Below, piece after piece: positions 401-47,945 of a DNA stretch of 64,000 nucleotides. The first letter of the stretch is position 1; each line of letters opens with the position of its first letter. This DNA is from Auanema rhodensis (lineage: Eukaryota > Animalia > Nematoda), in contig OZ059894.1 in assembly GCA_964057225.1 (NCBI GenBank), forward strand, positions 12,276,001 to 12,340,000, in the 5' to 3' direction. The notes beneath the pieces were generated by a model. It had not been told where the DNA came from, ran no database searches, and saw nothing but the letters and a program-made list of their open reading frames with translations. A program made the position numbers and the translations under genes.

Positions 401-716
401 TATTGACGTAGAGAATGTTTGTTCCGAAAAACTACAATATTAAACTATAAAAGTAACAAAAGCGTAGAGGCAGCAAAGACATGAATAAACATAAATGTAA
501 ATACAGAATTACCAGGTAGTACATAAGTATGACAAAAAATTATAAGAAAGCCATGAAAATAGAAGGTTTGTGAACAAATGAGAGGTACATCTTTGATCGT
601 ATAGTCATTTCTAAACCGTTCGTATGCTGCAGCATCGTCATAAGCGTCACTCAAGTTGAATTTCCATGTGTACTACACGATTTTCATTCTTATTGTTACA
701 TTCTTTCCCTGAGGGA

Positions 717-901
717 ATGGGCCGTTCCCGCCAGCAGTGCAAGAGCGGGTCGACCCGTGAGGTGGAGCTAGCAAGCCAGCATCTACCTCAAGTCTCAAAA
801 ATCGGTTAACCTTATTGTGAACCAATGGAACACATATCGAAGGTTAATTCGATAAGAACGATTACTACACTTTGATCTTAGCCAAAAGGCCGAGAAGCGA
901 T
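717..901 (-). ncRNA. U2: U2 spliceosomal snRNA (variant), copy 1
   Basis: Minus strand reads ATCGCTTCTCGGCCTTTTGGCTAAGATCAAAGTGTAGTA...; stem IIa TATCGAA/TTCGATA, IIc pairing TTAACCTT/AAGGTTAA, Sm site ATTTTTG, stem III TGAGGT/ACCTCA, stem IV GGGTCG/CGGCCC with TTGCAC loop. 3' end approximate. Confidence 0.96.
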
Positions 902-1333
902 ACAGCATAGCCATGAGTATCAAAGACATCAAGCAAATGTATCGTACTTGTTACGAGTGCACTCTCTCATTTGAATATAAAAGTGTGGTTTGACAATCTT
1001 GACTGTACAGGTCATAAATGGCTCATATAAACTGTGGATTTACTCAACTTTTGGACTTATTTTTTTCTTATTCGAAGCGCTGCACTTTTTTCTATTCTTT
1101 TTATTCAAATACTTGTATATAGTTTTATATGTACGGTTGCAAAGTTTCCGAATATTTTATATATTTTTATACAATAATTAGGAGAAGGTTAATACAATGA
1201 AATCTCCCAACTTTACAGTGTTTGTATTGCTTACAGTATCTAGAACAACCACTCTTGTAATATTAGAGCACATATCAATCAACAACTTTTTCTAGTTATC
1301 AAAGCTTTTTTATTTCTTCAAGATATTTCAAAT

Positions 1334-1344
1334 AAAATATAAAA
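1334..1344 (-). terminator. Pol III oligo-T terminator of 5S (TTTT-ATA-TTTT), repeated after every 5S copy
   Basis: T4 run at the 5S 3' end plus a second T4 three bases later. Confidence 0.75.
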
Positions 1345-1462
1345 GCTTACGACACCCGGGATTCCCAAGCCGTCTCCGATCCAAGTACTAACCGGGCCCA
1401 ACGTTGCTTGACTTGCCAGATCGGACGGGATGGCGTACTTTCAACGTGGTATGGTCGTAAGC
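1344..1462 (-). rRNA. 5S: 5S rRNA, unit 1 copy a
   Basis: 119 nt GCTTACGACCATACCACGTTGAAAG...AGTACTTGGATCGGAGACGGC...GTCGTAAGCT; terminal helix I, box C-like internal promoter, followed by a T run. Confidence 0.98.
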
Positions 1463-1485
1463 AATGTTATATTCTTCATTATCAG

Positions 1486-1490
1486 TTATA
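1486..1490 (-). promoter_or_regulatory. TATA-like element at -28..-24 of 5S (both copies, all units)
   Basis: TATAA on the minus strand at the position typical of 5S upstream elements; the AT-rich context lowers significance. Confidence 0.45.
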
Positions 1491-1703
1491 TCACTCTAAA
1501 TCTTGTTGTTAATAGTTAGGACCACAAAGAAAACAACAGGAACAGTAACAAATGAAATGCCCAAACTTTACAGTGTTCGAGTTATTTACAGTATCTAAGA
1601 CTACCTCTGTCGTGTTATTAGAGCAAACATTCGATTAACAACAACTTTTTTTTAGTTATCAAAGCTTTTTTATTTCTTCAAAAAATTTCAAATAAAATAT
1701 AAA

Positions 1704-1822
1704 AGCTTACGACACCCGGGATTCCCAAGCCGTCTCCGATCCAAGTACTAACCGGGCCCAACGTTGCTTGACTTGCCAGATCGGACGGGATGGCGTACTT
1801 TCAACGTGGTATGGTCGTAAGC
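1704..1822 (-). rRNA. 5S: 5S rRNA, unit 1 copy b
   Basis: Identical to 1344-1462, 360 bp away. Confidence 0.98.
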
Positions 1823-1964
1823 AATGTCATATTCTTCATTATCAGTTATATCACTCTAAATCTTGTTGTTAATAGATACGACCACAAAGAAAACAACAGG
1901 AACAGTAACAATAACAAAAAAAATTTTTTTTTCACCTATGTGTCTAAAGGTTAGCCATGTATCC

Positions 1965-1967
<3 letters not shown>

Positions 1968-2011
<44 letters not shown>
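1968..2011. repeat. (TA)n microsatellite, one per unit; (TA)22 here, about 14-36 across units
   Basis: Directly visible. Confidence 0.98.
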
Positions 2012-2014
<3 letters not shown>

Positions 2015-3195
2015 ACAGTAAAAAGTCCAATCAAGAGAGAAATTTTTTCAACACATAGTTGTTTTTTTTTTAAATATCATTGTTTTTCCTCATAACTCGG
2101 TTTAAACTCGTTCTAACCCGTTGAAATACGTCTAGAAAGTCTTTATAACATGCATATGTATGATAGAACTTCATATTTATTGTAATAGAAAATTTTATTT
2201 TCAGACGTCTTGGTTAACAATGATATGTTTTACCCCCTTATAATTTTTATCATAATGTTCCTTATACGGAACGCTCAATGAAACTTGCTTCCAGAAAAAT
2301 TTCTTTCTATTTTTTCTTCATATGTACGTAGATACTATAGAGAACTATGATAGAAAACTTTAACATTCACGAAATCATCATTTCTCATTACGCTACGGAG
2401 GTTTAAAAAGCTGTGTTTTACCTTATAATAGACCGGAAAACCCTTGTGTTAAAACTGGACCGTTTTTACACATATAAAAATGTCCCGTATTCGGGACCCT
2501 AATGTAACTTTTGATTCCCTATATTTTTTTTCATGAAATTTACAATCTACTGTAGAAAGAAGAATTATTTTTATAAAAACTGTAAATTTTTGAAAAATGA
2601 AAACAAAACGAAAACAAAAACAACTTTTTTTTGAACATTTTCTCACACAAGGGTCCCCCCTTACCTACTTTTTTTCTCATTACTCGTTTCAACCTCATCC
2701 GATCACTCTGCAAACATGTTTAATCGTTCTAACTTGTTGAAATACGTCTTAAAAGTCTAAACAACATGCATATGCATAATAGAAACCACCCGAATAGGCC
2801 CCCACGCACTAAACGAGATATATACATTACCAGTATAGTAATAGAACACATATTGAAGATTAATTCGATAAGAACAATTTATTGACGTAGAGAATGTTTG
2901 TTCCGAAAAACTACAATATTAAACTATAAAAGTAACAAAAGCGTAGAGGCAGCAAAGACATGAATAAACATAAATGTAAATACAGAATTACCAGGTAGTA
3001 CATAAGTATGACAAAAAATTATAAGAAAGCCATGAAAATAGAAGGTTTGTGAACAAATGAGAGGTACATCTTTGATCGTATAGTCATTTCTAAACCGTTC
3101 GTATGCTGCAGCATCGTCATAAGCGTCACTCAAGTTGAATTTCCATGTGTACTACACGATTTTCATTCTTATTGTTACATTCTTTCCCTGAGGGA

Positions 3196-3380
3196 ATGGG
3201 CCGTTCCCGCCAGCAGTGCAAGAGCGGGTCGACCCGTGAGGTGGAGCTAGCAAGCCAGCATCTACCTCAAGTCTCAAAAATCGGTTAACCTTATTGTGAA
3301 CCAATGGAACACATATCGAAGGTTAATTCGATAAGAACGATTACTACACTTTGATCTTAGCCAAAAGGCCGAGAAGCGAT
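3196..3380 (-). ncRNA. U2: U2 snRNA copy 2
   Basis: Same as 717-901. Confidence 0.95.
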
Positions 3381-4491: not shown

Positions 4492-5672
4492 ACAGTAAAA
4501 AGTCCAATCAAGAGAGAAATTTTTTCAACACATAGTTGTTTTTTTTTTAAATATCATTGTTTTTCCTCATAACTCGGTTTAAACTCGTTCTAACCCGTTG
4601 AAATACGTCTAGAAAGTCTTTATAACATGCATATGTATGATAGAACTTCATATTTATTGTAATAGAAAATTTTATTTTCAGACGTCTTGGTTAACAATGA
4701 TATGTTTTACCCCCTTATAATTTTTATCATAATGTTCCTTATACGGAACGCTCAATGAAACTTGCTTCCAGAAAAATTTCTTTCTATTTTTTCTTCATAT
4801 GTACGTAGATACTATAGAGAACTATGATAGAAAACTTTAACATTCACGAAATCATCATTTCTCATTACGCTACGGAGGTTTAAAAAGCTGTGTTTTACCT
4901 TATAATAGACCGGAAAACCCTTGTGTTAAAACTGGACCGTTTTTACACATATAAAAATGTCCCGTATTCGGGACCCTAATGTAACTTTTGATTCCCTATA
5001 TTTTTTTTCATGAAATTTACAATCTACTGTAGAAAGAAGAATTATTTTTATAAAAACTGTAAATTTTTGAAAAATGAAAACAAAACGAAAACAAAAACAA
5101 CTTTTTTTTGAACATTTTCTCACACAAGGGTCCCCCCTTACCTACTTTTTTTCTCATTACTCGTTTCAACCTCATCCGATCACTCTGCAAACATGTTTAA
5201 TCGTTCTAACTTGTTGAAATACGTCTTAAAAGTCTAAACAACATGCATATGCATAATAGAAACCACCCGAATAGGCCCCCACGCACTAAACGAGATATAT
5301 ACATTACCAGTATAGTAATAGAACACATATTGAAGATTAATTCGATAAGAACAATTTATTGACGTAGAGAATGTTTGTTCCGAAAAACTACAATATTAAA
5401 CTATAAAAGTAACAAAAGCGTAGAGGCAGCAAAGACATGAATAAACATAAATGTAAATACAGAATTACCAGGTAGTACATAAGTATGACAAAAAATTATA
5501 AGAAAGCCATGAAAATAGAAGGTTTGTGAACAAATGAGAGGTACATCTTTGATCGTATAGTCATTTCTAAACCGTTCGTATGCTGCAGCATCGTCATAAG
5601 CGTCACTCAAGTTGAATTTCCATGTGTACTACACGATTTTCATTCTTATTGTTACATTCTTTCCCTGAGGGA

Positions 5673-5857
5673 ATGGGCCGTTCCCGCCAGCAGTGCAAGA
5701 GCGGGTCGACCCGTGAGGTGGAGCTAGCAAGCCAGCATCTACCTCAAGTCTCAAAAATCGGTTAACCTTATTGTGAACCAATGGAACACATATCGAAGGT
5801 TAATTCGATAAGAACGATTACTACACTTTGATCTTAGCCAAAAGGCCGAGAAGCGAT
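5673..5857 (-). ncRNA. U2: U2 snRNA copy 3
   Basis: Same as 717-901. Confidence 0.95.
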
Positions 5858-6968: not shown

Positions 6969-8149
6969 ACAGTAAAAAGTCCAATCAAGAGAGAAATTTT
7001 TTCAACACATAGTTGTTTTTTTTTTAAATATCATTGTTTTTCCTCATAACTCGGTTTAAACTCGTTCTAACCCGTTGAAATACGTCTAGAAAGTCTTTAT
7101 AACATGCATATGTATGATAGAACTTCATATTTATTGTAATAGAAAATTTTATTTTCAGACGTCTTGGTTAACAATGATATGTTTTACCCCCTTATAATTT
7201 TTATCATAATGTTCCTTATACGGAACGCTCAATGAAACTTGCTTCCAGAAAAATTTCTTTCTATTTTTTCTTCATATGTACGTAGATACTATAGAGAACT
7301 ATGATAGAAAACTTTAACATTCACGAAATCATCATTTCTCATTACGCTACGGAGGTTTAAAAAGCTGTGTTTTACCTTATAATAGACCGGAAAACCCTTG
7401 TGTTAAAACTGGACCGTTTTTACACATATAAAAATGTCCCGTATTCGGGACCCTAATGTAACTTTTGATTCCCTATATTTTTTTTCATGAAATTTACAAT
7501 CTACTGTAGAAAGAAGAATTATTTTTATAAAAACTGTAAATTTTTGAAAAATGAAAACAAAACGAAAACAAAAACAACTTTTTTTTGAACATTTTCTCAC
7601 ACAAGGGTCCCCCCTTACCTACTTTTTTTCTCATTACTCGTTTCAACCTCATCCGATCACTCTGCAAACATGTTTAATCGTTCTAACTTGTTGAAATACG
7701 TCTTAAAAGTCTAAACAACATGCATATGCATAATAGAAACCACCCGAATAGGCCCCCACGCACTAAACGAGATATATACATTACCAGTATAGTAATAGAA
7801 CACATATTGAAGATTAATTCGATAAGAACAATTTATTGACGTAGAGAATGTTTGTTCCGAAAAACTACAATATTAAACTATAAAAGTAACAAAAGCGTAG
7901 AGGCAGCAAAGACATGAATAAACATAAATGTAAATACAGAATTACCAGGTAGTACATAAGTATGACAAAAAATTATAAGAAAGCCATGAAAATAGAAGGT
8001 TTGTGAACAAATGAGAGGTACATCTTTGATCGTATAGTCATTTCTAAACCGTTCGTATGCTGCAGCATCGTCATAAGCGTCACTCAAGTTGAATTTCCAT
8101 GTGTACTACACGATTTTCATTCTTATTGTTACATTCTTTCCCTGAGGGA

Positions 8150-8334
8150 ATGGGCCGTTCCCGCCAGCAGTGCAAGAGCGGGTCGACCCGTGAGGTGGAG
8201 CTAGCAAGCCAGCATCTACCTCAAGTCTCAAAAATCGGTTAACCTTATTGTGAACCAATGGAACACATATCGAAGGTTAATTCGATAAGAACGATTACTA
8301 CACTTTGATCTTAGCCAAAAGGCCGAGAAGCGAT
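8150..8334 (-). ncRNA. U2: U2 snRNA copy 4
   Basis: Same as 717-901. Confidence 0.95.
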
Positions 8335-9449: not shown

Positions 9450-10629
9450 ACAGTAAAAAGTCCAATCAAGAGAGAAATTTTTTCAACACATAGTTGTTTT
9501 TTTTTTAAATATCATTGTTTTTCCTCATAACTCGGTTTAAACTCGTTCTAACCCGTTGAAATACGTCTAGAAAGTCTTTATAACATGCATATGTATGATA
9601 GAACTTCATATTTATTGTAATAGAAAATTTTATTTTCAGACGTCTTGGTTAACAATGATATGTTTTACCCCCTTATAATTTTTATCATAATGTTCCTTAT
9701 ACGGAACGCTCAATGAAACTTGCTTCCAGAAAAATTTCTTTCTATTTTTTCTTCATATGTACGTAGATACTATAGAGAACTATGATAGAAAACTTTAACA
9801 TTCACGAAATCATCATTTCTCATTACGCTACGGAGGTTTAAAAAGCTGTGTTTTACCTTATAATAGACCGGAAAACCCTTGTGTTAAAACTGGACCGTTT
9901 TTACACATATAAAAATGTCCCGTATTCGGGACCCTAATGTAACTTTTGATTCCCTATATTTTTTTTCATGAAATTTACAATCTACTGTAGAAAGAAGAAT
10001 TATTTTTATAAAAACTGTAAATTTTTGAAAAATGAAAACAAAACGAAAACAAAAACAACTTTTTTTTGAACATTTTCTCACACAAGGGTCCCCCCTTACC
10101 TACTTTTTTTCTCATTACTCGTTTCAACCTCATCCGATCACTCTGCAAACATGTTTAATCGTTCTAACTTGTTGAAATACGTCTTAAAAGTCTAAACAAC
10201 ATGCATATGCATAATAGAAACCACCCGAATAGGCCCCCACGCACTAAACGAGATATATACATTACCAGTATAGTAATAGAACACATATTGAAGATTAATT
10301 CGATAAGAACAATTTATTGACGTAGAGAATGTTTGTTCCGAAAAACTACAATATTAAACTATAAAAGTAACAAAAGCGTAGAGGCAGCAAAGACATGAAT
10401 AAACATAAATGTAAATACAGAATTACCAGGTAGTACATAAGTATGACAAAAAATTATAAGAAAGCATGAAAATAGAAGGTTTGTGAACAAATGAGAGGTA
10501 CATCTTTGATCGTATAGTCATTTCTAAACCGTTCGTATGCTGCAGCATCGTCATAAGCGTCACTCAAGTTGAATTTCCATGTGTACTACACGATTTTCAT
10601 TCTTATTGTTACATTCTTTCCCTGAGGGA

Positions 10630-10814
10630 ATGGGCCGTTCCCGCCAGCAGTGCAAGAGCGGGTCGACCCGTGAGGTGGAGCTAGCAAGCCAGCATCTACC
10701 TCAAGTCTCAAAAATCGGTTAACCTTATTGTGAACCAATGGAACACATATCGAAGGTTAATTCGATAAGAACGATTACTACACTTTGATCTTAGCCAAAA
10801 GGCCGAGAAGCGAT
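10630..10814 (-). ncRNA. U2: U2 snRNA copy 5
   Basis: Same as 717-901. Confidence 0.95.
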
Positions 10815-11926: not shown

Positions 11927-13107
11927 ACAGTAAAAAGTCCAATCAAGAGAGAAATTTTTTCAACACATAGTTGTTTTTTTTTTAAATATCATTGTTTTTC
12001 CTCATAACTCGGTTTAAACTCGTTCTAACCCGTTGAAATACGTCTAGAAAGTCTTTATAACATGCATATGTATGATAGAACTTCATATTTATTGTAATAG
12101 AAAATTTTATTTTCAGACGTCTTGGTTAACAATGATATGTTTTACCCCCTTATAATTTTTATCATAATGTTCCTTATACGGAACGCTCAATGAAACTTGC
12201 TTCCAGAAAAATTTCTTTCTATTTTTTCTTCATATGTACGTAGATACTATAGAGAACTATGATAGAAAACTTTAACATTCACGAAATCATCATTTCTCAT
12301 TACGCTACGGAGGTTTAAAAAGCTGTGTTTTACCTTATAATAGACCGGAAAACCCTTGTGTTAAAACTGGACCGTTTTTACACATATAAAAATGTCCCGT
12401 ATTCGGGACCCTAATGTAACTTTTGATTCCCTATATTTTTTTTCATGAAATTTACAATCTACTGTAGAAAGAAGAATTATTTTTATAAAAACTGTAAATT
12501 TTTGAAAAATGAAAACAAAACGAAAACAAAAACAACTTTTTTTTGAACATTTTCTCACACAAGGGTCCCCCCTTACCTACTTTTTTTCTCATTACTCGTT
12601 TCAACCTCATCCGATCACTCTGCAAACATGTTTAATCGTTCTAACTTGTTGAAATACGTCTTAAAAGTCTAAACAACATGCATATGCATAATAGAAACCA
12701 CCCGAATAGGCCCCCACGCACTAAACGAGATATATACATTACCAGTATAGTAATAGAACACATATTGAAGATTAATTCGATAAGAACAATTTATTGACGT
12801 AGAGAATGTTTGTTCCGAAAAACTACAATATTAAACTATAAAAGTAACAAAAGCGTAGAGGCAGCAAAGACATGAATAAACATAAATGTAAATACAGAAT
12901 TACCAGGTAGTACATAAGTATGACAAAAAATTATAAGAAAGCCATGAAAATAGAAGGTTTGTGAACAAATGAGAGGTACATCTTTGATCGTATAGTCATT
13001 TCTAAACCGTTCGTATGCTGCAGCATCGTCATAAGCGTCACTCAAGTTGAATTTCCATGTGTACTACACGATTTTCATTCTTATTGTTACATTCTTTCCC
13101 TGAGGGA

Positions 13108-13292
13108 ATGGGCCGTTCCCGCCAGCAGTGCAAGAGCGGGTCGACCCGTGAGGTGGAGCTAGCAAGCCAGCATCTACCTCAAGTCTCAAAAATCGGTTAA
13201 CCTTATTGTGAACCAATGGAACACATATCGAAGGTTAATTCGATAAGAACGATTACTACACTTTGATCTTAGCCAAAAGGCCGAGAAGCGAT
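13108..13292 (-). ncRNA. U2: U2 snRNA copy 6
   Basis: Same as 717-901. Confidence 0.95.
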
Positions 13293-14399: not shown

Positions 14400-15579
14400 A
14401 CAGTAAAAAGTCCAATCAAGAGAGAAATTTTTTCAACACATAGTTGTTTTTTTTTTAAATATCATTGTTTTTCCTCATAACTCGGTTTAAACTCGTTCTA
14501 ACCCGTTGAAATACGTCTAGAAAGTCTTTATAACATGCATATGTATGATAGAACTTCATATTTATTGTAATAGAAAATTTTATTTTCAGACGTCTTGGTT
14601 AACAATGATATGTTTTACCCCCTTATAATTTTTATCATAATGTTCCTTATACGGAACGCTCAATGAAACTTGCTTCCAGAAAAATTTCTTTCTATTTTTT
14701 CTTCATATGTACGTAGATACTATAGAGAACTATGATAGAAAACTTTAACATTCACGAAATCATCATTTCTCATTACGCTACGGAGGTTTAAAAAGCTGTG
14801 TTTTACCTTATAATAGACCGGAAAACCCTTGTGTTAAAACTGGACCGTTTTTACACATATAAAAATGTCCCGTATTCGGGACCCTAATGTAACTTTTGAT
14901 TCCCTATATTTTTTTTCATGAAATTTACAATCTACTGTAGAAAGAAGAATTATTTTTATAAAAACTGTAAATTTTTGAAAAATGAAAACAAAACGAAAAC
15001 AAAAACAACTTTTTTTTGAACATTTTCTCACACAAGGGTCCCCCCTTACCTACTTTTTTTCTCATTACTCGTTTCAACCTCATCCGATCACTCTGCAAAC
15101 ATGTTTAATCGTTCTAACTTGTTGAAATACGTCTTAAAAGTCTAAACAACATGCATATGCATAATAGAAACCACCCGAATAGGCCCCCACGCACTAAACG
15201 AGATATATACATTACCAGTATAGTAATAGAACACATATTGAAGATTAATTCGATAAGAACAATTTATTGACGTAGAGAATGTTTGTTCCGAAAAACTACA
15301 ATATTAAACTATAAAAGTAACAAAAGCGTAGAGGCAGCAAAGACATGAATAAACATAAATGTAAATACAGAATTACCAGGTAGTACATAAGTATGACAAA
15401 AAATTATAAGAAAGCCATGAAAAAGAAGGTTTGTGAACAAATGAGAGGTACATCTTTGATCGTATAGTCATTTCTAAACCGTTCGTATGCTGCAGCATCG
15501 TCATAAGCGTCACTCAAGTTGAATTTCCATGTGTACTACACGATTTTCATTCTTATTGTTACATTCTTTCCCTGAGGGA

Positions 15580-15764
15580 ATGGGCCGTTCCCGCCAGCAG
15601 TGCAAGAGCGGGTCGACCCGTGAGGTGGAGCTAGCAAGCCAGCATCTACCTCAAGTCTCAAAAATCGGTTAACCTTATTGTGAACCAATGGAACACATAT
15701 CGAAGGTTAATTCGATAAGAACGATTACTACACTTTGATCTTAGCCAAAAGGCCGAGAAGCGAT
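15580..15764 (-). ncRNA. U2: U2 snRNA copy 7
   Basis: Same as 717-901. Confidence 0.95.
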
Positions 15765-16877: not shown

Positions 16878-18058
16878 ACAGTAAAAAGTCCAATCAAGAG
16901 AGAAATTTTTTCAACACATAGTTGTTTTTTTTTTAAATATCATTGTTTTTCCTCATAACTCGGTTTAAACTCGTTCTAACCCGTTGAAATACGTCTAGAA
17001 AGTCTTTATAACATGCATATGTATGATAGAACTTCATATTTATTGTAATAGAAAATTTTATTTTCAGACGTCTTGGTTAACAATGATATGTTTTACCCCC
17101 TTATAATTTTTATCATAATGTTCCTTATACGGAACGCTCAATGAAACTTGCTTCCAGAAAAATTTCTTTCTATTTTTTCTTCATATGTACGTAGATACTA
17201 TAGAGAACTATGATAGAAAACTTTAACATTCACGAAATCATCATTTCTCATTACGCTACGGAGGTTTAAAAAGCTGTGTTTTACCTTATAATAGACCGGA
17301 AAACCCTTGTGTTAAAACTGGACCGTTTTTACACATATAAAAATGTCCCGTATTCGGGACCCTAATGTAACTTTTGATTCCCTATATTTTTTTTCATGAA
17401 ATTTACAATCTACTGTAGAAAGAAGAATTATTTTTATAAAAACTGTAAATTTTTGAAAAATGAAAACAAAACGAAAACAAAAACAACTTTTTTTTGAACA
17501 TTTTCTCACACAAGGGTCCCCCCTTACCTACTTTTTTTCTCATTACTCGTTTCAACCTCATCCGATCACTCTGCAAACATGTTTAATCGTTCTAACTTGT
17601 TGAAATACGTCTTAAAAGTCTAAACAACATGCATATGCATAATAGAAACCACCCGAATAGGCCCCCACGCACTAAACGAGATATATACATTACCAGTATA
17701 GTAATAGAACACATATTGAAGATTAATTCGATAAGAACAATTTATTGACGTAGAGAATGTTTGTTCCGAAAAACTACAATATTAAACTATAAAAGTAACA
17801 AAAGCGTAGAGGCAGCAAAGACATGAATAAACATAAATGTAAATACAGAATTACCAGGTAGTACATAAGTATGACAAAAAATTATAAGAAAGCCATGAAA
17901 ATAGAAGGTTTGTGAACAAATGAGAGGTACATCTTTGATCGTATAGTCATTTCTAAACCGTTCGTATGCTGCAGCATCGTCATAAGCGTCACTCAAGTTG
18001 AATTTCCATGTGTACTACACGATTTTCATTCTTATTGTTACATTCTTTCCCTGAGGGA

Positions 18059-18243
18059 ATGGGCCGTTCCCGCCAGCAGTGCAAGAGCGGGTCGACCCGT
18101 GAGGTGGAGCTAGCAAGCCAGCATCTACCTCAAGTCTCAAAAATCGGTTAACCTTATTGTGAACCAATGGAACACATATCGAAGGTTAATTCGATAAGAA
18201 CGATTACTACACTTTGATCTTAGCCAAAAGGCCGAGAAGCGAT
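18059..18243 (-). ncRNA. U2: U2 snRNA copy 8
   Basis: Same as 717-901. Confidence 0.95.
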
Positions 18244-19355: not shown

Positions 19356-20536
19356 ACAGTAAAAAGTCCAATCAAGAGAGAAATTTTTTCAACACATAGT
19401 TGTTTTTTTTTTAAATATCATTGTTTTTCCTCATAACTCGGTTTAAACTCGTTCTAACCCGTTGAAATACGTCTAGAAAGTCTTTATAACATGCATATGT
19501 ATGATAGAACTTCATATTTATTGTAATAGAAAATTTTATTTTCAGACGTCTTGGTTAACAATGATATGTTTTACCCCCTTATAATTTTTATCATAATGTT
19601 CCTTATACGGAACGCTCAATGAAACTTGCTTCCAGAAAAATTTCTTTCTATTTTTTCTTCATATGTACGTAGATACTATAGAGAACTATGATAGAAAACT
19701 TTAACATTCACGAAATCATCATTTCTCATTACGCTACGGAGGTTTAAAAAGCTGTGTTTTACCTTATAATAGACCGGAAAACCCTTGTGTTAAAACTGGA
19801 CCGTTTTTACACATATAAAAATGTCCCGTATTCGGGACCCTAATGTAACTTTTGATTCCCTATATTTTTTTTCATGAAATTTACAATCTACTGTAGAAAG
19901 AAGAATTATTTTTATAAAAACTGTAAATTTTTGAAAAATGAAAACAAAACGAAAACAAAAACAACTTTTTTTTGAACATTTTCTCACACAAGGGTCCCCC
20001 CTTACCTACTTTTTTTCTCATTACTCGTTTCAACCTCATCCGATCACTCTGCAAACATGTTTAATCGTTCTAACTTGTTGAAATACGTCTTAAAAGTCTA
20101 AACAACATGCATATGCATAATAGAAACCACCCGAATAGGCCCCCACGCACTAAACGAGATATATACATTACCAGTATAGTAATAGAACACATATTGAAGA
20201 TTAATTCGATAAGAACAATTTATTGACGTAGAGAATGTTTGTTCCGAAAAACTACAATATTAAACTATAAAAGTAACAAAAGCGTAGAGGCAGCAAAGAC
20301 ATGAATAAACATAAATGTAAATACAGAATTACCAGGTAGTACATAAGTATGACAAAAAATTATAAGAAAGCCATGAAAATAGAAGGTTTGTGAACAAATG
20401 AGAGGTACATCTTTGATCGTATAGTCATTTCTAAACCGTTCGTATGCTGCAGCATCGTCATAAGCGTCACTCAAGTTGAATTTCCATGTGTACTACACGA
20501 TTTTCATTCTTATTGTTACATTCTTTCCCTGAGGGA

Positions 20537-20721
20537 ATGGGCCGTTCCCGCCAGCAGTGCAAGAGCGGGTCGACCCGTGAGGTGGAGCTAGCAAGCCAGC
20601 ATCTACCTCAAGTCTCAAAAATCGGTTAACCTTATTGTGAACCAATGGAACACATATCGAAGGTTAATTCGATAAGAACGATTACTACACTTTGATCTTA
20701 GCCAAAAGGCCGAGAAGCGAT
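20537..20721 (-). ncRNA. U2: U2 snRNA copy 9
   Basis: Same as 717-901. Confidence 0.95.
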
Positions 20722-21820: not shown

Positions 21821-23000
21821 ACAGTAAAAAGTCCAATCAAGAGAGAAATTTTTTCAACACATAGTTGTTTTTTTTTTAAATATCATTGTTTTTCCTCATA
21901 ACTCGGTTTAAACTCGTTCTAACCCGTTGAAATACGTCTAGAAAGTCTTTATAACATGCATATGTATGATAGAACTTCATATTTATTGTAATAGAAAATT
22001 TTATTTTCAGACGTCTTGGTTAACAATGATATGTTTTACCCCCTTATAATTTTTATCATAATGTTCCTTATACGGAACGCTCAATGAAACTTGCTTCCAG
22101 AAAAATTTCTTTCTATTTTTTCTTCATATGTACGTAGATACTATAGAGAACTATGATAGAAAACTTTAACATTCACGAAATCATCATTTCTCATTACGCT
22201 ACGGAGGTTTAAAAAGCTGTGTTTTACCTTATAATAGACCGGAAAACCCTTGTGTTAAAACTGGACCGTTTTTACACATATAAAAATGTCCCGTATTCGG
22301 GACCCTAATGTAACTTTTGATTCCCTATATTTTTTTTCATGAAATTTACAATCTACTGTAGAAAGAAGAATTATTTTTATAAAAACTGTAAATTTTTGAA
22401 AAATGAAAACAAAACGAAAACAAAAACAACTTTTTTTTAACATTTTCTCACACAAGGGTCCCCCCTTACCTACTTTTTTTCTCATTACTCGTTTCAACCT
22501 CATCCGATCACTCTGCAAACATGTTTAATCGTTCTAACTTGTTGAAATACGTCTTAAAAGTCTAAACAACATGCATATGCATAATAGAAACCACCCGAAT
22601 AGGCCCCCACGCACTAAACGAGATATATACATTACCAGTATAGTAATAGAACACATATTGAAGATTAATTCGATAAGAACAATTTATTGACGTAGAGAAT
22701 GTTTGTTCCGAAAAACTACAATATTAAACTATAAAAGTAACAAAAGCGTAGAGGCAGCAAAGACATGAATAAACATAAATGTAAATACAGAATTACCAGG
22801 TAGTACATAAGTATGACAAAAAATTATAAGAAAGCCATGAAAATAGAAGGTTTGTGAACAAATGAGAGGTACATCTTTGATCGTATAGTCATTTCTAAAC
22901 CGTTCGTATGCTGCAGCATCGTCATAAGCGTCACTCAAGTTGAATTTCCATGTGTACTACACGATTTTCATTCTTATTGTTACATTCTTTCCCTGAGGGA

Positions 23001-23185
23001 ATGGGCCGTTCCCGCCAGCAGTGCAAGAGCGGGTCGACCCGTGAGGTGGAGCTAGCAAGCCAGCATCTACCTCAAGTCTCAAAAATCGGTTAACCTTATT
23101 GTGAACCAATGGAACACATATCGAAGGTTAATTCGATAAGAACGATTACTACACTTTGATCTTAGCCAAAAGGCCGAGAAGCGAT
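23001..23185 (-). ncRNA. U2: U2 snRNA copy 10
   Basis: Same as 717-901. Confidence 0.95.
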
Positions 23186-24326: not shown

Positions 24327-25507
24327 ACAGTAAAAAGTCCAATCAAGAGAGAAATTTTTTCAACACATAGTTGTTTTTTTTTTAAATATCATTGTTTTTC
24401 CTCATAACTCGGTTTAAACTCGTTCTAACCCGTTGAAATACGTCTAGAAAGTCTTTATAACATGCATATGTATGATAGAACTTCATATTTATTGTAATAG
24501 AAAATTTTATTTTCAGACGTCTTGGTTAACAATGATATGTTTTACCCCCTTATAATTTTTATCATAATGTTCCTTATACGGAACGCTCAATGAAACTTGC
24601 TTCCAGAAAAATTTCTTTCTATTTTTTCTTCATATGTACGTAGATACTATAGAGAACTATGATAGAAAACTTTAACATTCACGAAATCATCATTTCTCAT
24701 TACGCTACGGAGGTTTAAAAAGCTGTGTTTTACCTTATAATAGACCGGAAAACCCTTGTGTTAAAACTGGACCGTTTTTACACATATAAAAATGTCCCGT
24801 ATTCGGGACCCTAATGTAACTTTTGATTCCCTATATTTTTTTTCATGAAATTTACAATCTACTGTAGAAAGAAGAATTATTTTTATAAAAACTGTAAATT
24901 TTTGAAAAATGAAAACAAAACGAAAACAAAAACAACTTTTTTTTGAACATTTTCTCACACAAGGGTCCCCCCTTACCTACTTTTTTTCTCATTACTCGTT
25001 TCAACCTCATCCGATCACTCTGCAAACATGTTTAATCGTTCTAACTTGTTGAAATACGTCTTAAAAGTCTAAACAACATGCATATGCATAATAGAAACCA
25101 CCCGAATAGGCCCCCACGCACTAAACGAGATATATACATTACCAGTATAGTAATAGAACACATATTGAAGATTAATTCGATAAGAACAATTTATTGACGT
25201 AGAGAATGTTTGTTCCGAAAAACTACAATATTAAACTATAAAAGTAACAAAAGCGTAGAGGCAGCAAAGACATGAATAAACATAAATGTAAATACAGAAT
25301 TACCAGGTAGTACATAAGTATGACAAAAAATTATAAGAAAGCCATGAAAATAGAAGGTTTGTGAACAAATGAGAGGTACATCTTTGATCGTATAGTCATT
25401 TCTAAACCGTTCGTATGCTGCAGCATCGTCATAAGCGTCACTCAAGTTGAATTTCCATGTGTACTACACGATTTTCATTCTTATTGTTACATTCTTTCCC
25501 TGAGGGA

Positions 25508-25692
25508 ATGGGCCGTTCCCGCCAGCAGTGCAAGAGCGGGTCGACCCGTGAGGTGGAGCTAGCAAGCCAGCATCTACCTCAAGTCTCAAAAATCGGTTAA
25601 CCTTATTGTGAACCAATGGAACACATATCGAAGGTTAATTCGATAAGAACGATTACTACACTTTGATCTTAGCCAAAAGGCCGAGAAGCGAT
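25508..25692 (-). ncRNA. U2: U2 snRNA copy 11
   Basis: Same as 717-901; substitution at -2 in the flank (25694). Confidence 0.95.
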
Positions 25693-26789: not shown

Positions 26790-27970
26790 ACAGTAAAAAG
26801 TCCAATCAAGAGAGAAATTTTTTCAACACATAGTTGTTTTTTTTTTAAATATCATTGTTTTTCCTCATAACTCGGTTTAAACTCGTTCTAACCCGTTGAA
26901 ATACGTCTAGAAAGTCTTTATAACATGCATATGTATGATAGAACTTCATATTTATTGTAATAGAAAATTTTATTTTCAGACGTCTTGGTTAACAATGATA
27001 TGTTTTACCCCCTTATAATTTTTATCATAATGTTCCTTATACGGAACGCTCAATGAAACTTGCTTCCAGAAAAATTTCTTTCTATTTTTTCTTCATATGT
27101 ACGTAGATACTATAGAGAACTATGATAGAAAACTTTAACATTCACGAAATCATCATTTCTCATTACGCTACGGAGGTTTAAAAAGCTGTGTTTTACCTTA
27201 TAATAGACCGGAAAACCCTTGTGTTAAAACTGGACCGTTTTTACACATATAAAAATGTCCCGTATTCGGGACCCTAATGTAACTTTTGATTCCCTATATT
27301 TTTTTTCATGAAATTTACAATCTACTGTAGAAAGAAGAATTATTTTTATAAAAACTGTAAATTTTTGAAAAATGAAAACAAAACGAAAACAAAAACAACT
27401 TTTTTTTGAACATTTTCTCACACAAGGGTCCCCCCTTACCTACTTTTTTTCTCATTACTCGTTTCAACCTCATCCGATCACTCTGCAAACATGTTTAATC
27501 GTTCTAACTTGTTGAAATACGTCTTAAAAGTCTAAACAACATGCATATGCATAATAGAAACCACCCGAATAGGCCCCCACGCACTAAACGAGATATATAC
27601 ATTACCAGTATAGTAATAGAACACATATTGAAGATTAATTCGATAAGAACAATTTATTGACGTAGAGAATGTTTGTTCCGAAAAACTACAATATTAAACT
27701 ATAAAAGTAACAAAAGCGTAGAGGCAGCAAAGACATGAATAAACATAAATGTAAATACAGAATTACCAGGTAGTACATAAGTATGACAAAAAATTATAAG
27801 AAAGCCATGAAAATAGAAGGTTTGTGAACAAATGAGAGGTACATCTTTGATCGTATAGTCATTTCTAAACCGTTCGTATGCTGCAGCATCGTCATAAGCG
27901 TCACTCAAGTTGAATTTCCATGTGTACTACACGATTTTCATTCTTATTGTTACATTCTTTCCCTGAGGGA

Positions 27971-28155
27971 ATGGGCCGTTCCCGCCAGCAGTGCAAGAGC
28001 GGGTCGACCCGTGAGGTGGAGCTAGCAAGCCAGCATCTACCTCAAGTCTCAAAAATCGGTTAACCTTATTGTGAACCAATGGAACACATATCGAAGGTTA
28101 ATTCGATAAGAACGATTACTACACTTTGATCTTAGCCAAAAGGCCGAGAAGCGAT
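27971..28155 (-). ncRNA. U2: U2 snRNA copy 12
   Basis: Same as 717-901. Confidence 0.95.
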
Positions 28156-29254: not shown

Positions 29255-30435
29255 ACAGTAAAAAGTCCAATCAAGAGAGAAATTTTTTCAACACATAGTT
29301 GTTTTTTTTTTAAATATCATTGTTTTTCCTCATAACTCGGTTTAAACTCGTTCTAACCCGTTGAAATACGTCTAGAAAGTCTTTATAACATGCATATGTA
29401 TGATAGAACTTCATATTTATTGTAATAGAAAATTTTATTTTCAGACGTCTTGGTTAACAATGATATGTTTTACCCCCTTATAATTTTTATCATAATGTTC
29501 CTTATACGGAACGCTCAATGAAACTTGCTTCCAGAAAAATTTCTTTCTATTTTTTCTTCATATGTACGTAGATACTATAGAGAACTATGATAGAAAACTT
29601 TAACATTCACGAAATCATCATTTCTCATTACGCTACGGAGGTTTAAAAAGCTGTGTTTTACCTTATAATAGACCGGAAAACCCTTGTGTTAAAACTGGAC
29701 CGTTTTTACACATATAAAAATGTCCCGTATTCGGGACCCTAATGTAACTTTTGATTCCCTATATTTTTTTTCATGAAATTTACAATCTACTGTAGAAAGA
29801 AGAATTATTTTTATAAAAACTGTAAATTTTTGAAAAATGAAAACAAAACGAAAACAAAAACAACTTTTTTTTGAACATTTTCTCACACAAGGGTCCCCCC
29901 TTACCTACTTTTTTTCTCATTACTCGTTTCAACCTCATCCGATCACTCTGCAAACATGTTTAATCGTTCTAACTTGTTGAAATACGTCTTAAAAGTCTAA
30001 ACAACATGCATATGCATAATAGAAACCACCCGAATAGGCCCCCACGCACTAAACGAGATATATACATTACCAGTATAGTAATAGAACACATATTGAAGAT
30101 TAATTCGATAAGAACAATTTATTGACGTAGAGAATGTTTGTTCCGAAAAACTACAATATTAAACTATAAAAGTAACAAAAGCGTAGAGGCAGCAAAGACA
30201 TGAATAAACATAAATGTAAATACAGAATTACCAGGTAGTACATAAGTATGACAAAAAATTATAAGAAAGCCATGAAAATAGAAGGTTTGTGAACAAATGA
30301 GAGGTACATCTTTGATCGTATAGTCATTTCTAAACCGTTCGTATGCTGCAGCATCGTCATAAGCGTCACTCAAGTTGAATTTCCATGTGTACTACACAAT
30401 TTTCATTCTTATTGTTACATTCTTTCCCTGAGGGA

Positions 30436-30620
30436 ATGGGCCGTTCCCGCCAGCAGTGCAAGAGCGGGTCGACCCGTGAGGTGGAGCTAGCAAGCCAGCA
30501 TCTACCTCAAGTCTCAAAAATCGGTTAACCTTATTGTGAACCAATGGAACACATATCGAAGGTTAATTCGATAAGAACGATTACTACACTTTGATCTTAG
30601 CCAAAAGGCCGAGAAGCGAT
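30436..30620 (-). ncRNA. U2: U2 snRNA copy 13
   Basis: Same as 717-901. Confidence 0.95.
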
Positions 30621-31737: not shown

Positions 31738-32918
31738 ACAGTAAAAAGTCCAATCAAGAGAGAAATTTTTTCAACACATAGTTGTTTTTTTTTTAAATAT
31801 CATTGTTTTTCCTCATAACTCGGTTTAAACTCGTTCTAACCCGTTGAAATACGTCTAGAAAGTCTTTATAACATGCATATGTATGATAGAACTTCATATT
31901 TATTGTAATAGAAAATTTTATTTTCAGACGTCTTGGTTAACAATGATATGTTTTACCCCCTTATAATTTTTATCATAATGTTCCTTATACGGAACGCTCA
32001 ATGAAACTTGCTTCCAGAAAAATTTCTTTCTATTTTTTCTTCATATGTACGTAGATACTATAGAGAACTATGATAGAAAACTTTAACATTCACGAAATCA
32101 TCATTTCTCATTACGCTACGGAGGTTTAAAAAGCTGTGTTTTACCTTATAATAGACCGGAAAACCCTTGTGTTAAAACTGGACCGTTTTTACACATATAA
32201 AAATGTCCCGTATTCGGGACCCTAATGTAACTTTTGATTCCCTATATTTTTTTTCATGAAATTTACAATCTACTGTAGAAAGAAGAATTATTTTTATAAA
32301 AACTGTAAATTTTTGAAAAATGAAAACAAAACGAAAACAAAAACAACTTTTTTTTGAACATTTTCTCACACAAGGGTCCCCCCTTACCTACTTTTTTTCT
32401 CATTACTCGTTTCAACCTCATCCGATCACTCTGCAAACATGTTTAATCGTTCTAACTTGTTGAAATACGTCTTAAAAGTCTAAACAACATGCATATGCAT
32501 AATAGAAACCACCCGAATAGGCCCCCACGCACTAAACGAGATATATACATTACCAGTATAGTAATAGAACACATATTGAAGATTAATTCGATAAGAACAA
32601 TTTATTGACGTAGAGAATGTTTGTTCCGAAAAACTACAATATTAAACTATAAAAGTAACAAAAGCGTAGAGGCAGCAAAGACATGAATAAACATAAATGT
32701 AAATACAGAATTACCAGGTAGTACATAAGTATGACAAAAAATTATAAGAAAGCCATGAAAATAGAAGGTTTGTGAACAAATGAGAGGTACATCTTTGATC
32801 GTATAGTCATTTCTAAACCGTTCGTATGCTGCAGCATCGTCATAAGCGTCACTCAAGTTGAATTTCCATGTGTACTACACGATTTTCATTCTTATTGTTA
32901 CATTCTTTCCCTGAGGGA

Positions 32919-33103
32919 ATGGGCCGTTCCCGCCAGCAGTGCAAGAGCGGGTCGACCCGTGAGGTGGAGCTAGCAAGCCAGCATCTACCTCAAGTCTCAA
33001 AAATCGGTTAACCTTATTGTGAACCAATGGAACACATATCGAAGGTTAATTCGATAAGAACGATTACTACACTTTGATCTTAGCCAAAAGGCCGAGAAGC
33101 GAT
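32919..33103 (-). ncRNA. U2: U2 snRNA copy 14
   Basis: Same as 717-901. Confidence 0.95.
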
Positions 33104-34218: not shown

Positions 34219-35399
34219 ACAGTAAAAAGTCCAATCAAGAGAGAAATTTTTTCAACACATAGTTGTTTTTTTTTAAAATATCATTGTTTTTCCTCATAAC
34301 TCGGTTTAAACTCGTTCTAACCCGTTGAAATACGTCTAGAAAGTCTTTATAACATGCATATGTATGATAGAACTTCATATTTATTGTAATAGAAAATTTT
34401 ATTTTCAGACGTCTTGGTTAACAATGATATGTTTTACCCCCTTATAATTTTTATCATAATGTTCCTTATACGGAACGCTCAATGAAACTTGCTTCCAGAA
34501 AAATTTCTTTCTATTTTTTCTTCATATGTACGTAGATACTATAGAGAACTATGATAGAAAACTTTAACATTCACGAAATCATCATTTCTCATTACGCTAC
34601 GGAGGTTTAAAAAGCTGTGTTTTACCTTATAATAGACCGGAAAACCCTTGTGTTAAAACTGGACCGTTTTTACACATATAAAAATGTCCCGTATTCGGGA
34701 CCCTAATGTAACTTTTGATTCCCTATATTTTTTTTCATGAAATTTACAATCTACTGTAGAAAGAAGAATTATTTTTATAAAAACTGTAAATTTTTGAAAA
34801 ATGAAAACAAAACGAAAACAAAAACAACTTTTTTTTGAACATTTTCTCACACAAGGGTCCCCCCTTACCTACTTTTTTTCTCATTACTCGTTTCAACCTC
34901 ATCCGATCACTCTGCAAACATGTTTAATCGTTCTAACTTGTTGAAATACGTCTTAAAAGTCTAAACAACATGCATATGCATAATAGAAACCACCCGAATA
35001 GGCCCCCACGCACTAAACGAGATATATACATTACCAGTATAGTAATAGAACACATATTGAAGATTAATTCGATAAGAACAATTTATTGACGTAGAGAATG
35101 TTTGTTCCGAAAAACTACAATATTAAACTATAAAAGTAACAAAAGCGTAGAGGCAGCAAAGACATGAATAAACATAAATGTAAATACAGAATTACCAGGT
35201 AGTACATAAGTATGACAAAAAATTATAAGAAAGCCATGAAAATAGAAGGTTTGTGAACAAATGAGAGGTACATCTTTGATCGTATAGTCATTTCTAAACC
35301 GTTCGTATGCTGCAGCATCGTCATAAGCGTCACTCAAGTTGAATTTCCATGTGTACTACACGATTTTCATTCTTATTGTTACATTCTTTCCCTGAGGGA

Positions 35400-35584
35400 A
35401 TGGGCCGTTCCCGCCAGCAGTGCAAGAGCGGGTCGACCCGTGAGGTGGAGCTAGCAAGCCAGCATCTACCTCAAGTCTCAAAAATCGGTTAACCTTATTG
35501 TGAACCAATGGAACACATATCGAAGGTTAATTCGATAAGAACGATTACTACACTTTGATCTTAGCCAAAAGGCCGAGAAGCGAT
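35400..35584 (-). ncRNA. U2: U2 snRNA copy 15
   Basis: Same as 717-901. Confidence 0.95.
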
Positions 35585-36697: not shown

Positions 36698-37878
36698 ACA
36701 GTAAAAAGTCCAATCAAGAGAGAAATTTTTTCAACACATAGTTGTTTTTTTTTTAAATATCATTGTTTTTCCTCATAACTCGGTTTAAACTCGTTCTAAC
36801 CCGTTGAAATACGTCTAGAAAGTCTTTATAACATGCATATGTATGATAGAACTTCATATTTATTGTAATAGAAAATTTTATTTTCAGACGTCTTGGTTAA
36901 CAATGATATGTTTTACCCCCTTATAATTTTTATCATAATGTTCCTTATACGGAACGCTCAATGAAACTTGCTTCCAGAAAAATTTCTTTCTATTTTTTCT
37001 TCATATGTACGTAGATACTATAGAGAACTATGATAGAAAACTTTAACATTCACGAAATCATCATTTCTCATTACGCTACGGAGGTTTAAAAAGCTGTGTT
37101 TTACCTTATAATAGACCGGAAAACCCTTGTGTTAAAACTGGACCGTTTTTACACATATAAAAATGTCCCGTATTCGGGACCCTAATGTAACTTTTGATTC
37201 CCTATATTTTTTTTCATGAAATTTACAATCTACTGTAGAAAGAAGAATTATTTTTATAAAAACTGTAAATTTTTGAAAAATGAAAACAAAACGAAAACAA
37301 AAACAACTTTTTTTTGAACATTTTCTCACACAAGGGTCCCCCCTTACCTACTTTTTTTCTCATTACTCGTTTCAACCTCATCCGATCACTCTGCAAACAT
37401 GTTTAATCGTTCTAACTTGTTGAAATACGTCTTAAAAGTCTAAACAACATGCATATGCATAATAGAAACCACCCGAATAGGCCCCCACGCACTAAACGAG
37501 ATATATACATTACCAGTATAGTAATAGAACACATATTGAAGATTAATTCGATAAGAACAATTTATTGACGTAGAGAATGTTTGTTCCGAAAAACTACAAT
37601 ATTAAACTATAAAAGTAACAAAAGCGTAGAGGCAGCAAAGACATGAATAAACATAAATGTAAATACAGAATTACCAGGTAGTACATAAGTATGACAAAAA
37701 ATTATAAGAAAGCCATGAAAATAGAAGGTTTGTGAACAAATGAGAGGTACATCTTTGATCGTATAGTCATTTCTAAACCGTTCGTATGCTGCAGCATCGT
37801 CATAAGCGTCACTCAAGTTGAATTTCCATGTGTACTACACGATTTTCATTCTTATTGTTACATTCTTTCCCTGAGGGA

Positions 37879-38063
37879 ATGGGCCGTTCCCGCCAGCAGT
37901 GCAAGAGCGGGTCGACCCGTGAGGTGGAGCTAGCAAGCCAGCATCTACCTCAAGTCTCAAAAATCGGTTAACCTTATTGTGAACCAATGGAACACATATC
38001 GAAGGTTAATTCGATAAGAACGATTACTACACTTTGATCTTAGCCAAAAGGCCGAGAAGCGAT
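37879..38063 (-). ncRNA. U2: U2 snRNA copy 16
   Basis: Same as 717-901. Confidence 0.95.
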
Positions 38064-39178: not shown

Positions 39179-40359
39179 ACAGTAAAAAGTCCAATCAAGA
39201 GAGAAATTTTTTCAACACATAGTTGTTTTTTTTTTAAATATCATTGTTTTTCCTCATAACTCGGTTTAAACTCGTTCTAACCCGTTGAAATACGTCTAGA
39301 AAGTCTTTATAACATGCATATGTATGATAGAACTTCATATTTATTGTAATAGAAAATTTTATTTTCAGACGTCTTGGTTAACAATGATATGTTTTACCCC
39401 CTTATAATTTTTATCATAATGTTCCTTATACGGAACGCTCAATGAAACTTGCTTCCAGAAAAATTTCTTTCTATTTTTTCTTCATATGTACGTAGATACT
39501 ATAGAGAACTATGATAGAAAACTTTAACATTCACGAAATCATCATTTCTCATTACGCTACGGAGGTTTAAAAAGCTGTGTTTTACCTTATAATAGACCGG
39601 AAAACCCTTGTGTTAAAACTGGACCGTTTTTACACATATAAAAATGTCCCGTATTCGGGACCCTAATGTAACTTTTGATTCCCTATATTTTTTTTCATGA
39701 AATTTACAATCTACTGTAGAAAGAAGAATTATTTTTATAAAAACTGTAAATTTTTGAAAAATGAAAACAAAACGAAAACAAAAACAACTTTTTTTTGAAC
39801 ATTTTCTCACACAAGGGTCCCCCCTTACCTACTTTTTTTCTCATTACTCGTTTCAACCTCATCCGATCACTCTGCAAACATGTTTAATCGTTCTAACTTG
39901 TTGAAATACGTCTTAAAAGTCTAAACAACATGCATATGCATAATAGAAACCACCCGAATAGGCCCCCACGCACTAAACGAGATATATACATTACCAGTAT
40001 AGTAATAGAACACATATTGAAGATTAATTCGATAAGAACAATTTATTGACGTAGAGAATGTTTGTTCCGAAAAACTACAATATTAAACTATAAAAGTAAC
40101 AAAAGCGTAGAGGCAGCAAAGACATGAATAAACATAAATGTAAATACAGAATTACCAGGTAGTACATAAGTATGACAAAAAATTATAAGAAAGCCATGAA
40201 AATAGAAGGTTTGTGAACAAATGAGAGGTACATCTTTGATCGTATAGTCATTTCTAAACCGTTCGTATGCTGCAGCATCGTCATAAGCGTCACTCAAGTT
40301 GAATTTCCATGTGTACTACACGATTTTCATTCTTATTGTTACATTCTTTCCCTGAGGGA

Positions 40360-40544
40360 ATGGGCCGTTCCCGCCAGCAGTGCAAGAGCGGGTCGACCCG
40401 TGAGGTGGAGCTAGCAAGCCAGCATCTACCTCAAGTCTCAAAAATCGGTTAACCTTATTGTGAACCAATGGAACACATATCGAAGGTTAATTCGATAAGA
40501 ACGATTACTACACTTTGATCTTAGCCAAAAGGCCGAGAAGCGAT
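40360..40544 (-). ncRNA. U2: U2 snRNA copy 17
   Basis: Same as 717-901. Confidence 0.95.
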
Positions 40545-41655: not shown

Positions 41656-42836
41656 ACAGTAAAAAGTCCAATCAAGAGAGAAATTTTTTCAACACATAGT
41701 TGTTTTTTTTTTAAATATCATTGTTTTTCCTCATAACTCGGTTTAAACTCGTTCTAACCCGTTGAAATACGTCTAGAAAGTCTTTATAACATGCATATGT
41801 ATGATAGAACTTCATATTTATTGTAATAGAAAATTTTATTTTCAGACGTCTTGGTTAACAATGATATGTTTTACCCCCTTATAATTTTTATCATAATGTT
41901 CCTTATACGGAACGCTCAATGAAACTTGCTTCCAGAAAAATTTCTTTCTATTTTTTCTTCATATGTACGTAGATACTATAGAGAACTATGATAGAAAACT
42001 TTAACATTCACGAAATCATCATTTCTCATTACGCTACGGAGGTTTAAAAAGCTGTGTTTTACCTTATAATAGACCGGAAAACCCTTGTGTTAAAACTGGA
42101 CCGTTTTTACACATATAAAAATGTCCCGTATTCGGGACCCTAATGTAACTTTTGATTCCCTATATTTTTTTTCATGAAATTTACAATCTACTGTAGAAAG
42201 AAGAATTATTTTTATAAAAACTGTAAATTTTTGAAAAATGAAAACAAAACGAAAACAAAAACAACTTTTTTTTGAACATTTTCTCACACAAGGGTCCCCC
42301 CTTACCTACTTTTTTTCTCATTACTCGTTTCAACCTCATCCGATCACTCTGCAAACATGTTTAATCGTTCTAACTTGTTGAAATACGTCTTAAAAGTCTA
42401 AACAACATGCATATGCATAATAGAAACCACCCGAATAGGCCCCCACGCACTAAACGAGATATATACATTACCAGTATAGTAATAGAACACATATTGAAGA
42501 TTAATTCGATAAGAACAATTTATTGACGTAGAGAATGTTTGTTCCGAAAAACTACAATATTAAACTATAAAAGTAACAAAAGCGTAGAGGCAGCAAAGAC
42601 ATGAATAAACATAAATGTAAATACAGAATTACCAGGTAGTACATAAGTATGACAAAAAATTATAAGAAAGCCATGAAAATAGAAGGTTTGTGAACAAATG
42701 AGAGGTACATCTTTGATCGTATAGTCATTTCTAAACCGTTCGTATGCTGCAGCATCGTCATAAGCGTCACTCAAGTTGAATTTCCATGTGTACTACACGA
42801 TTTTCATTCTTATTGTTACATTCTTTCCCTGAGGGA

Positions 42837-43021
42837 ATGGGCCGTTCCCGCCAGCAGTGCAAGAGCGGGTCGACCCGTGAGGTGGAGCTAGCAAGCCAGC
42901 ATCTACCTCAAGTCTCAAAAATCGGTTAACCTTATTGTGAACCAATGGAACACATATCGAAGGTTAATTCGATAAGAACGATTACTACACTTTGATCTTA
43001 GCCAAACGGCCGAGAAGCGAT
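42837..43021 (-). ncRNA. U2: U2 snRNA copy 18 (loop I substitution at 43007)
   Basis: As 717-901 with loop I TTTT>GTTT. Confidence 0.94.
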
Positions 43022-47937: not shown

Positions 47938-47945
47938 TATTGAAG

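Follow-up and report, generated by a model that had tools for sequence, protein, structure and literature searches.

The window, a stretch of 64,000 nucleotides of contig OZ059894.1 of the nematode Auanema rhodensis (assembly GCA_964057225.1), is occupied from position 1 to 47945 by a tandem array on the minus strand, whose units of ~2.48 kb each carry one full-length gene for the spliceosomal U2 snRNA and two genes for 5S rRNA. An Rfam scan of the window returned 19 full U2 matches, one partial U2 match and 38 5S matches, all on the minus strand, and it is these matches, together with their spacing and the identity of the units, that define the array as a 5S-5S-U2 repeat. The window opens mid-unit, and the array runs up to a 200-N gap in the assembly (47946 to 48145). 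The 5S genes, intact and scoring 111 bits, lie on the same strand as U2 and alternate with it; in unit 1 the first of the pair occupies positions 1344 to 1462 (RF00001, 111.2 bits) and the second positions 1704 to 1822 (Rfam RF00001), and the pair is the same in all units. Both genes lie within a direct sub-repeat of 360 bp with 91% identity (1196 to 1911, at the same place in each unit), and so the unit would have arisen when a 5S tandem pair was joined to U2. A permissive Rfam scan of one spacer (906 to 3190) detected neither an SL RNA nor anything else credible.

The complete U2 copies follow each other at intervals of 2463 to 2507 bases. Copy 1, the copy under study, is 190 nt long and spans positions 712 to 901 of the minus strand; it matches the full RF00004 model (positions 1 to 192) with a score of 148.4 bits (E 1.5e-30), where the gathering score that marks membership of the U2 family is 46. 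Eighteen of the 19 complete copies are identical, as judged from Rfam and sequence, and beside copy 1 these are located, all on the minus strand, at 3191 to 3380 (copy 2), 5668 to 5857 (copy 3), 8145 to 8334 (copy 4), 10625 to 10814 (copy 5), 13103 to 13292 (copy 6), 15575 to 15764 (copy 7), 18054 to 18243 (copy 8), 20532 to 20721 (copy 9), 22996 to 23185 (copy 10), 25503 to 25692 (copy 11), 27966 to 28155 (copy 12), 30431 to 30620 (copy 13), 32914 to 33103 (copy 14), 35395 to 35584 (copy 15), 37874 to 38063 (copy 16), 40355 to 40544 (copy 17) and 45307 to 45496 (copy 19). The single exception, copy 18 (42832 to 43021, minus strand; Rfam, 145.1 bits), carries a U15G change in the loop of stem I and shares with the others the altered triplet AUC described below.

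When compared within the array, the units are 98.2 to 100% identical (mean 99.6%), with about ten variable point sites per ~2480 positions of the unit, one of them within U2, and one indel-prone tract in addition. Diversity within the array is thus too low for selection on U2 to be demonstrable, and the identity of the copies reflects homogenisation by concerted evolution. The altered sequence is unlikely to be an artefact of the assembly, as runs guessed to be DNA, from three studies and under four organism labels, contain 0.72 to 0.93 of the words sampled from U2 and its flanks.

Tandem U2 arrays and the linkage of 5S to small RNA genes are both kinds of organisation that are already known. 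5S rDNA is linked to small RNA genes in the 5S-SL1 repeat of C. elegans, and to snRNA genes in fish, molluscs and crustaceans. Multi-copy U2 genes in tandem are also found in the human RNU2 array, whereas here U2 is linked to two 5S genes per unit. The C. elegans 5S-SL1 repeat is likewise a tandem unit of 5S and a spliceosome-related small RNA gene, but in the worm studied here the partner is U2, the 5S genes are two per unit and SL RNA was not detected.

Having laid out the array, we turn to the RNA that it encodes. Nucleotides 1 to 39 of U2, comprising the bases that pair with U6 and the branch-point recognition sequence GUAGUA (nt 34-39; 863 to 868, minus strand), agree with the Rfam consensus save for an extra base, A31, and, within nt 1-30, one lower-case (variable) position. 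The Sm site AUUUUUG (nt 100-106; 796 to 802, minus strand) is present, and stems I, IIa, IIb, III and IV are all formed in the RF00004 alignment, with three non-standard pairs, of which two (U-U) fall in IIb and the third in III. The C. elegans U2 presumably carries an extra A that matches A31, as one of its two extra bases. Since this fits a C. elegans numbering that runs two positions ahead of that of vertebrates in this region (Deryusheva and Gall, PMC5733568), A31 may be a shared nematode feature and possibly not a new one. A preliminary description of this locus had held that, outside a single motif, the RNA is intact and does not look like a decaying pseudogene, and the full-length model match, the complete set of stems, the Sm site and the single mutation across 19 copies all bear this out.

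The motif in question lies directly 3' of GUAGUA. Nucleotides 32-48 read GUGUAGUA-AUC-GUUCUU, with GAUCAAA as 5' context, in all 19 complete copies, which confirms the AUC that had been placed at nt 40-42 (860 to 862, minus strand; plus-strand 862-860), where the consensus has UCU; with G43 included, the four bases are AUCG in place of UCUG. Thus, GUAGUA-AUCG-UUCUU stands in 19/19 complete copies against GUAGUA-UCUG-UUCUU in the other eukaryotes that were checked, and the conserved UCUGUUCUU that is expected directly 3' of GUAGUA is replaced in every copy by AUCGUUCUU, of which the GUUCUU part is kept. A twentieth, headless copy, described below, is identical to the others from nt 39 on. The Rfam consensus has an upper-case GUGUAGUAUCUGUUCU at the altered site, and the aligner leaves three positions unmatched there. 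The change from UCUG to AUCG is most simply read as the gain of one A after GUAGUA and the loss of one U before the G, by which 'UC' would be shifted by one place; we prefer this reading to three substitutions because it requires two events. When set against canonical U2 (RF00004; human, C. elegans), the worm RNA therefore has the same length, U6-pairing region, GUAGUA, GUUCUU, stems and Sm site, but has AUCG for UCUG and a branchpoint-interacting stem-loop (BSL) whose upper part is predicted to be weaker.

In the spacer, 34 to 41 nt 3' of the U2 end (671 to 678, minus strand) and at the same offset in every unit, stands AAAATCG-TGTAGTA-CAC, in which the 8-mer GTGTAGTA recurs, here behind ATCG, so that the halves of the altered site appear in swapped order. 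The 8-mer has a chance of ~0.08 per unit; a relic junction, a decoy site and coincidence are all conceivable explanations.

The earlier assertion that UCU is the usual motif held for C. elegans, Trichinella, the hosts surveyed in PMC4640811 and the Rfam consensus. In the supplement of that paper by Kojima and Jurka, whose hosts are oomycetes, arthropods, Trichinella, reptiles and echinoderms, the U2 flanks read TCTGTTCTT 40 times and ATCGTTCTT never, and TCTG stands in the lines for Trichinella as well as in that for the C. elegans reference (PMC4640811). The U41 and U43 of C. elegans are targets of pseudouridylation (PMC5733568), and so U-C-U is kept there. The AUCG variant itself was found nowhere else among the collections searched: a 17-mer spanning the change, when searched for exactly in 241 million metagenome records, matched 85 loci, all of them by chance and none a U2; an 18-mer starting at nt 34 gave 7 chance matches in a scan of viral contigs, again with no U2 among them; and a nematode-type pattern in which the triplet was left open had 0 matches in prokaryote genome contigs and viral contigs. 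Absence from these metagenome, viral and prokaryote collections carries only modest weight. In a literature search, no paper printed the RNA string of the variant (the matches to the DNA string were unrelated primers), described the AUCG variant or linked a change in U2 sequence to Utopia, a retrotransposon discussed below.

To place the change within the BSL, we mapped the worm RNA on the pairs of the human structure, which are G25-C45, A26-U44, U27·U43, C28-G42, A29-U41, A30·C40, G31-U39 and U32-A38 (PMC13019295). The lower pairs are kept, as G25-C46, A26-U45 and C28-G43, while the six-base 5' arm of the upper BSL now lies opposite five bases, A39 A40 U41 C42 G43, and the upper pairs are lost or shifted. 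When nt 20-49 were folded, the minimum free energy (MFE) was -0.4 kcal/mol with the lower stem alone formed, compared to -2.2 kcal/mol for a version edited to the canonical motif, in line with the previous claim that the change weakens the canonical BSL. The probability of the C28-G43 pair was 0.29, compared to 0.80 in the canonical-edited RNA, and the best pairs of the upper BSL, G32-U41 and U33-A40, reached 0.18 to 0.19. An alternative register that had been put forward together with that claim, pairing GAU (nt 25-27) with AUC (nt 40-42), is not predicted, with an energy of +1.6 kcal/mol and pair probabilities below 0.05. Since all of the energies are close to zero and proteins hold the BSL in vivo, the weaker upper BSL is to be taken as a predicted tendency and not as a verdict.

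The introns of nematodes lack a branch-site consensus, as seen in C. elegans, and for this reason, as well as from the behaviour of BSL mutants in human cells, a looser upper BSL may be tolerable in a nematode. BSL mutants of yeast and human U2 have been made experimentally, reportedly also by Perriman and Ares in 2010. In human cells, branch sites of weak complementarity are no longer at a disadvantage once loop-proximal BSL pairs are lost, highly complementary sites have less of an advantage, and the extended branch helix shows little selection for Watson-Crick pairing (PMC13019295). The worm variant resembles the engineered mutants M5-M7 in that loop-proximal BSL pairs are removed or shifted; it differs from them in being a natural variant that every copy seen carries and that is apparently fixed, whereas the mutants are a minority species, and in that the change affects the 3' arm and its length and not single bases of the 5' arm.

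The change also bears on the modification of the RNA. A conserved pseudouridine site, numbered 41 in vertebrates, 42 in yeast and 43 in C. elegans, is guided in C. elegans by C50C3.14, the SCARNA15 orthologue (PMC5733568). The worm U2 has no U equivalent to vertebrate U41, yeast U42 or C. elegans U43, and since the position lacks a counterpart, the guide RNAs must, by this reasoning, have changed or lost the pocket for it. The motif change is real, as the preliminary description said, but its wording, a 'rewiring of the U2 core', was too strong for an RNA in which nt 1-39 match the consensus bar A31 and the lower BSL is kept.

At its far end the array breaks off within a U2 gene. The headless copy (47786 to 47937, minus strand; alignment and Rfam, 83.1 bits) comprises nt 39-190, is identical to the intact copies over this length, begins at the altered bases and is joined to eight non-U2 bases, CTTCAATA (47938 to 47945, minus strand), a junction that occurs once in the window. 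The array stops at the 200-N gap, which extends to 48145, after these eight foreign bases, and the break in the assembly probably falls within a repetitive element inserted in U2.

Utopia and Keno are U2-specific non-LTR retrotransposons of the RLE and the APE type, respectively, which are unrelated and nonetheless use the same U2 site; the U2 sequence downstream of Utopia begins with the base that follows GUAGUA, which is nt 39 when numbered as in human U2 (Kojima and Jurka 2015, PMC4640811). In worm numbering this bond is A39/A40, and the altered bases directly abut it, a coincidence seen in the sequence itself and absent from the account given in the preliminary description. The headless tail begins, behind CTTCAATA, at nt 39-41 (a run of A leaves an ambiguity of up to 2 nt), which is where U2 tails start at Utopia and Keno insertions; in both cases the tail starts at the first base after GUAGUA and stands behind A-rich foreign DNA. 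The A-rich ending of CTTCAATA is shared with the 3' ends of Utopia, and A-rich element ends are joined to TCTGTTCTT in the same supplement (PMC4640811). In contrast to the tails of the hosts listed there, which start with TCTGTTCTT, the worm tail reads (A)ATCGTTCTT, and of the presumed element 8 bases are visible before the gap. Taken on these features, CTTCAATA is likely the 3' end of an inserted element that is interrupted by the gap, and it is the position of the site together with the eight bases beside the gap that suggests a link to retrotransposons.

No long ORF, such as would encode the reverse transcriptase and endonuclease of an element of this kind, was found beyond the 200-N gap. 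The ~1.8 kb between the gap and the satellite that follows (48146 to 49980) is non-coding, with several internal short repeats, for instance GTTCCAAATGGTCTGAA, and without any ORF of more than 110 aa. The satellite, which flanks the U2-5S array at 49984 to 61465 and 62769 to 64000, has a 230-bp unit and a 459-bp higher-order period, with matches of 75 to 90%. An intact ORF of 346 aa (61621 to 62661, plus strand) encodes N-terminal helix-turn-helix domains and a DDE_3 domain that scores 24.0 bits, just below the Pfam cut-off of 28.6; it resembles a transposase of the Tc1/mariner type that has inserted into the satellite, and the public gene index has no entry for this exact protein.

Do these genes encode a working U2? 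The intact anatomy, the uniformity of all 19 complete copies and the lack of decay argue that they do, as do the shares of words recovered from sequencing runs, both those from DNA and those that may be from RNA. Three runs whose library type we guess to be RNA contain 0.62 of 29 sampled words (all runs were searched as contigs), which equals the share of U2 in the 311-base query (190/311); this is as expected for mature U2 RNA without flanks, and we take it as a hint. The upstream sequence, read without a nematode consensus, yielded no recognisable snRNA promoter element (PSE). On this evidence, the AUCG genes are likely to be the ordinary working U2 of the worm, typical of its lineage, and for the fuller explanation, that AUCG is carried by the ordinary working U2 and is kept uniform in a 5S-5S-U2 array by concerted evolution, we would put the probability at about 0.65.

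Two explanations would deny these genes that role. The array might be an amplified, non-functional derivative of U2, a satellite of pseudogenes that travels with 5S genes or retrotransposons while the working U2 lies elsewhere; the change does strike a nearly invariant motif, and identity within the array speaks of homogenisation and not of selection. However, the copies are full-length, every structural element is intact, the scores are far above the RF00004 threshold, one mutation per 19 copies gives no sign of decay and the runs guessed to be RNA contain a U2-sized share, all of which makes a pseudogene array highly improbable. Hardly better are the prospects of a specialised, high-copy U2 isoform, for example a germline- or stage-specific one, that would coexist with canonical UCUG genes and alter the choice of branch sites. 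Other animals are known to have U2 variants that differ in sequence, and here the deviation affects a segment that is sensitive for function, with a predicted weakening of the BSL, yet the 19 complete copies are uniform and nothing within the window suggests regulated use. Of the two options that the preliminary description had left side by side, we accordingly favour the lineage-wide change, since nothing points to stage or germline use of an isoform.

If the AUCG genes are the ordinary working U2, the change may have come about as follows. In the lineage of this worm, the four bases 3' of GUAGUA would have become AUCG by the gain of an A and the loss of a U, through a repair scar, a retrotransposition scar or an escape of the target site at the Utopia/Keno position, after which gene conversion together with unequal crossing-over would have carried AUCG through the arrays. 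Neither the U6- and branch-site-pairing bases nor the lower BSL stem would have been altered while the upper BSL was weakened, and this could have been tolerated, as nematode branch sites have no consensus and a weaker loop-proximal BSL would lower the demand for complementarity. We suspect an origin at the insertion site because a change of 3-4 bases beside one given bond of a 190-nt RNA has a chance of only ~2-4%, by our own post hoc estimate, and because the +1/-1 pair resembles a repair or junction scar; overall, we see about even odds that AUCG arose via activity at the Utopia/Keno site and was then spread by homogenisation of the array.

The same functional, lineage-typical U2 could also have acquired a near-neutral change that concerted evolution fixed, with the position at the retrotransposon site a coincidence. 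Any change that is tolerated can become fixed throughout an array under concerted evolution, and constraint may be relaxed, considering the degenerate branch sites of nematodes and the human data on the extended branch helix (PMC13019295). Against such a course of events stand the ~2-4% chance (post hoc, as said) of a change abutting that very bond, the paired +1/-1, which has the look of a repair scar rather than of substitutions, and the retention of UCU in the nematodes C. elegans and Trichinella, and we hold it to be possible, with the odds somewhat against it. A bolder version of the origin at the insertion site is that a selfish element rewrote a spliceosomal motif: AUCG would have come from faulty repair at a Utopia nick, or from an element that carried a U2 leader and rebuilt the head of the gene, and would then have reached all arrays, possibly shielding U2 from cleavage until the elements adapted. 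This we consider unlikely as a whole; were it true, it would amount to an arms race inside the core of U2, in which the pseudouridylation guides and the BSL-binding proteins were forced to follow.

The data show directly the AUCG sequence and its uniformity, an otherwise intact gene, the overlap with the insertion site and the lack of the variant in the searched collections; the function, tolerance and origin of AUCG are what we infer. The overlap with the target site of U2-specific retrotransposons raises a question that we found no paper to address, that is, whether target-specific mobile elements can alter the sequence of essential multicopy genes of their host. The finding would be of interest to spliceosome specialists if expression is confirmed, and more so if the link to retrotransposons holds. 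Few eukaryotic RNA sequences are as well conserved as the U2 segment beside the bases that bind the branch site. This segment provides the BSL with its 3' arm, and conserved pseudouridines lie within it. An animal with the segment altered in every U2 copy would amount to an experiment of nature on the extent to which the spliceosome depends on this motif, and it would come with a testable prediction, namely that the guide RNAs and the BSL-binding proteins have changed along with AUCG.
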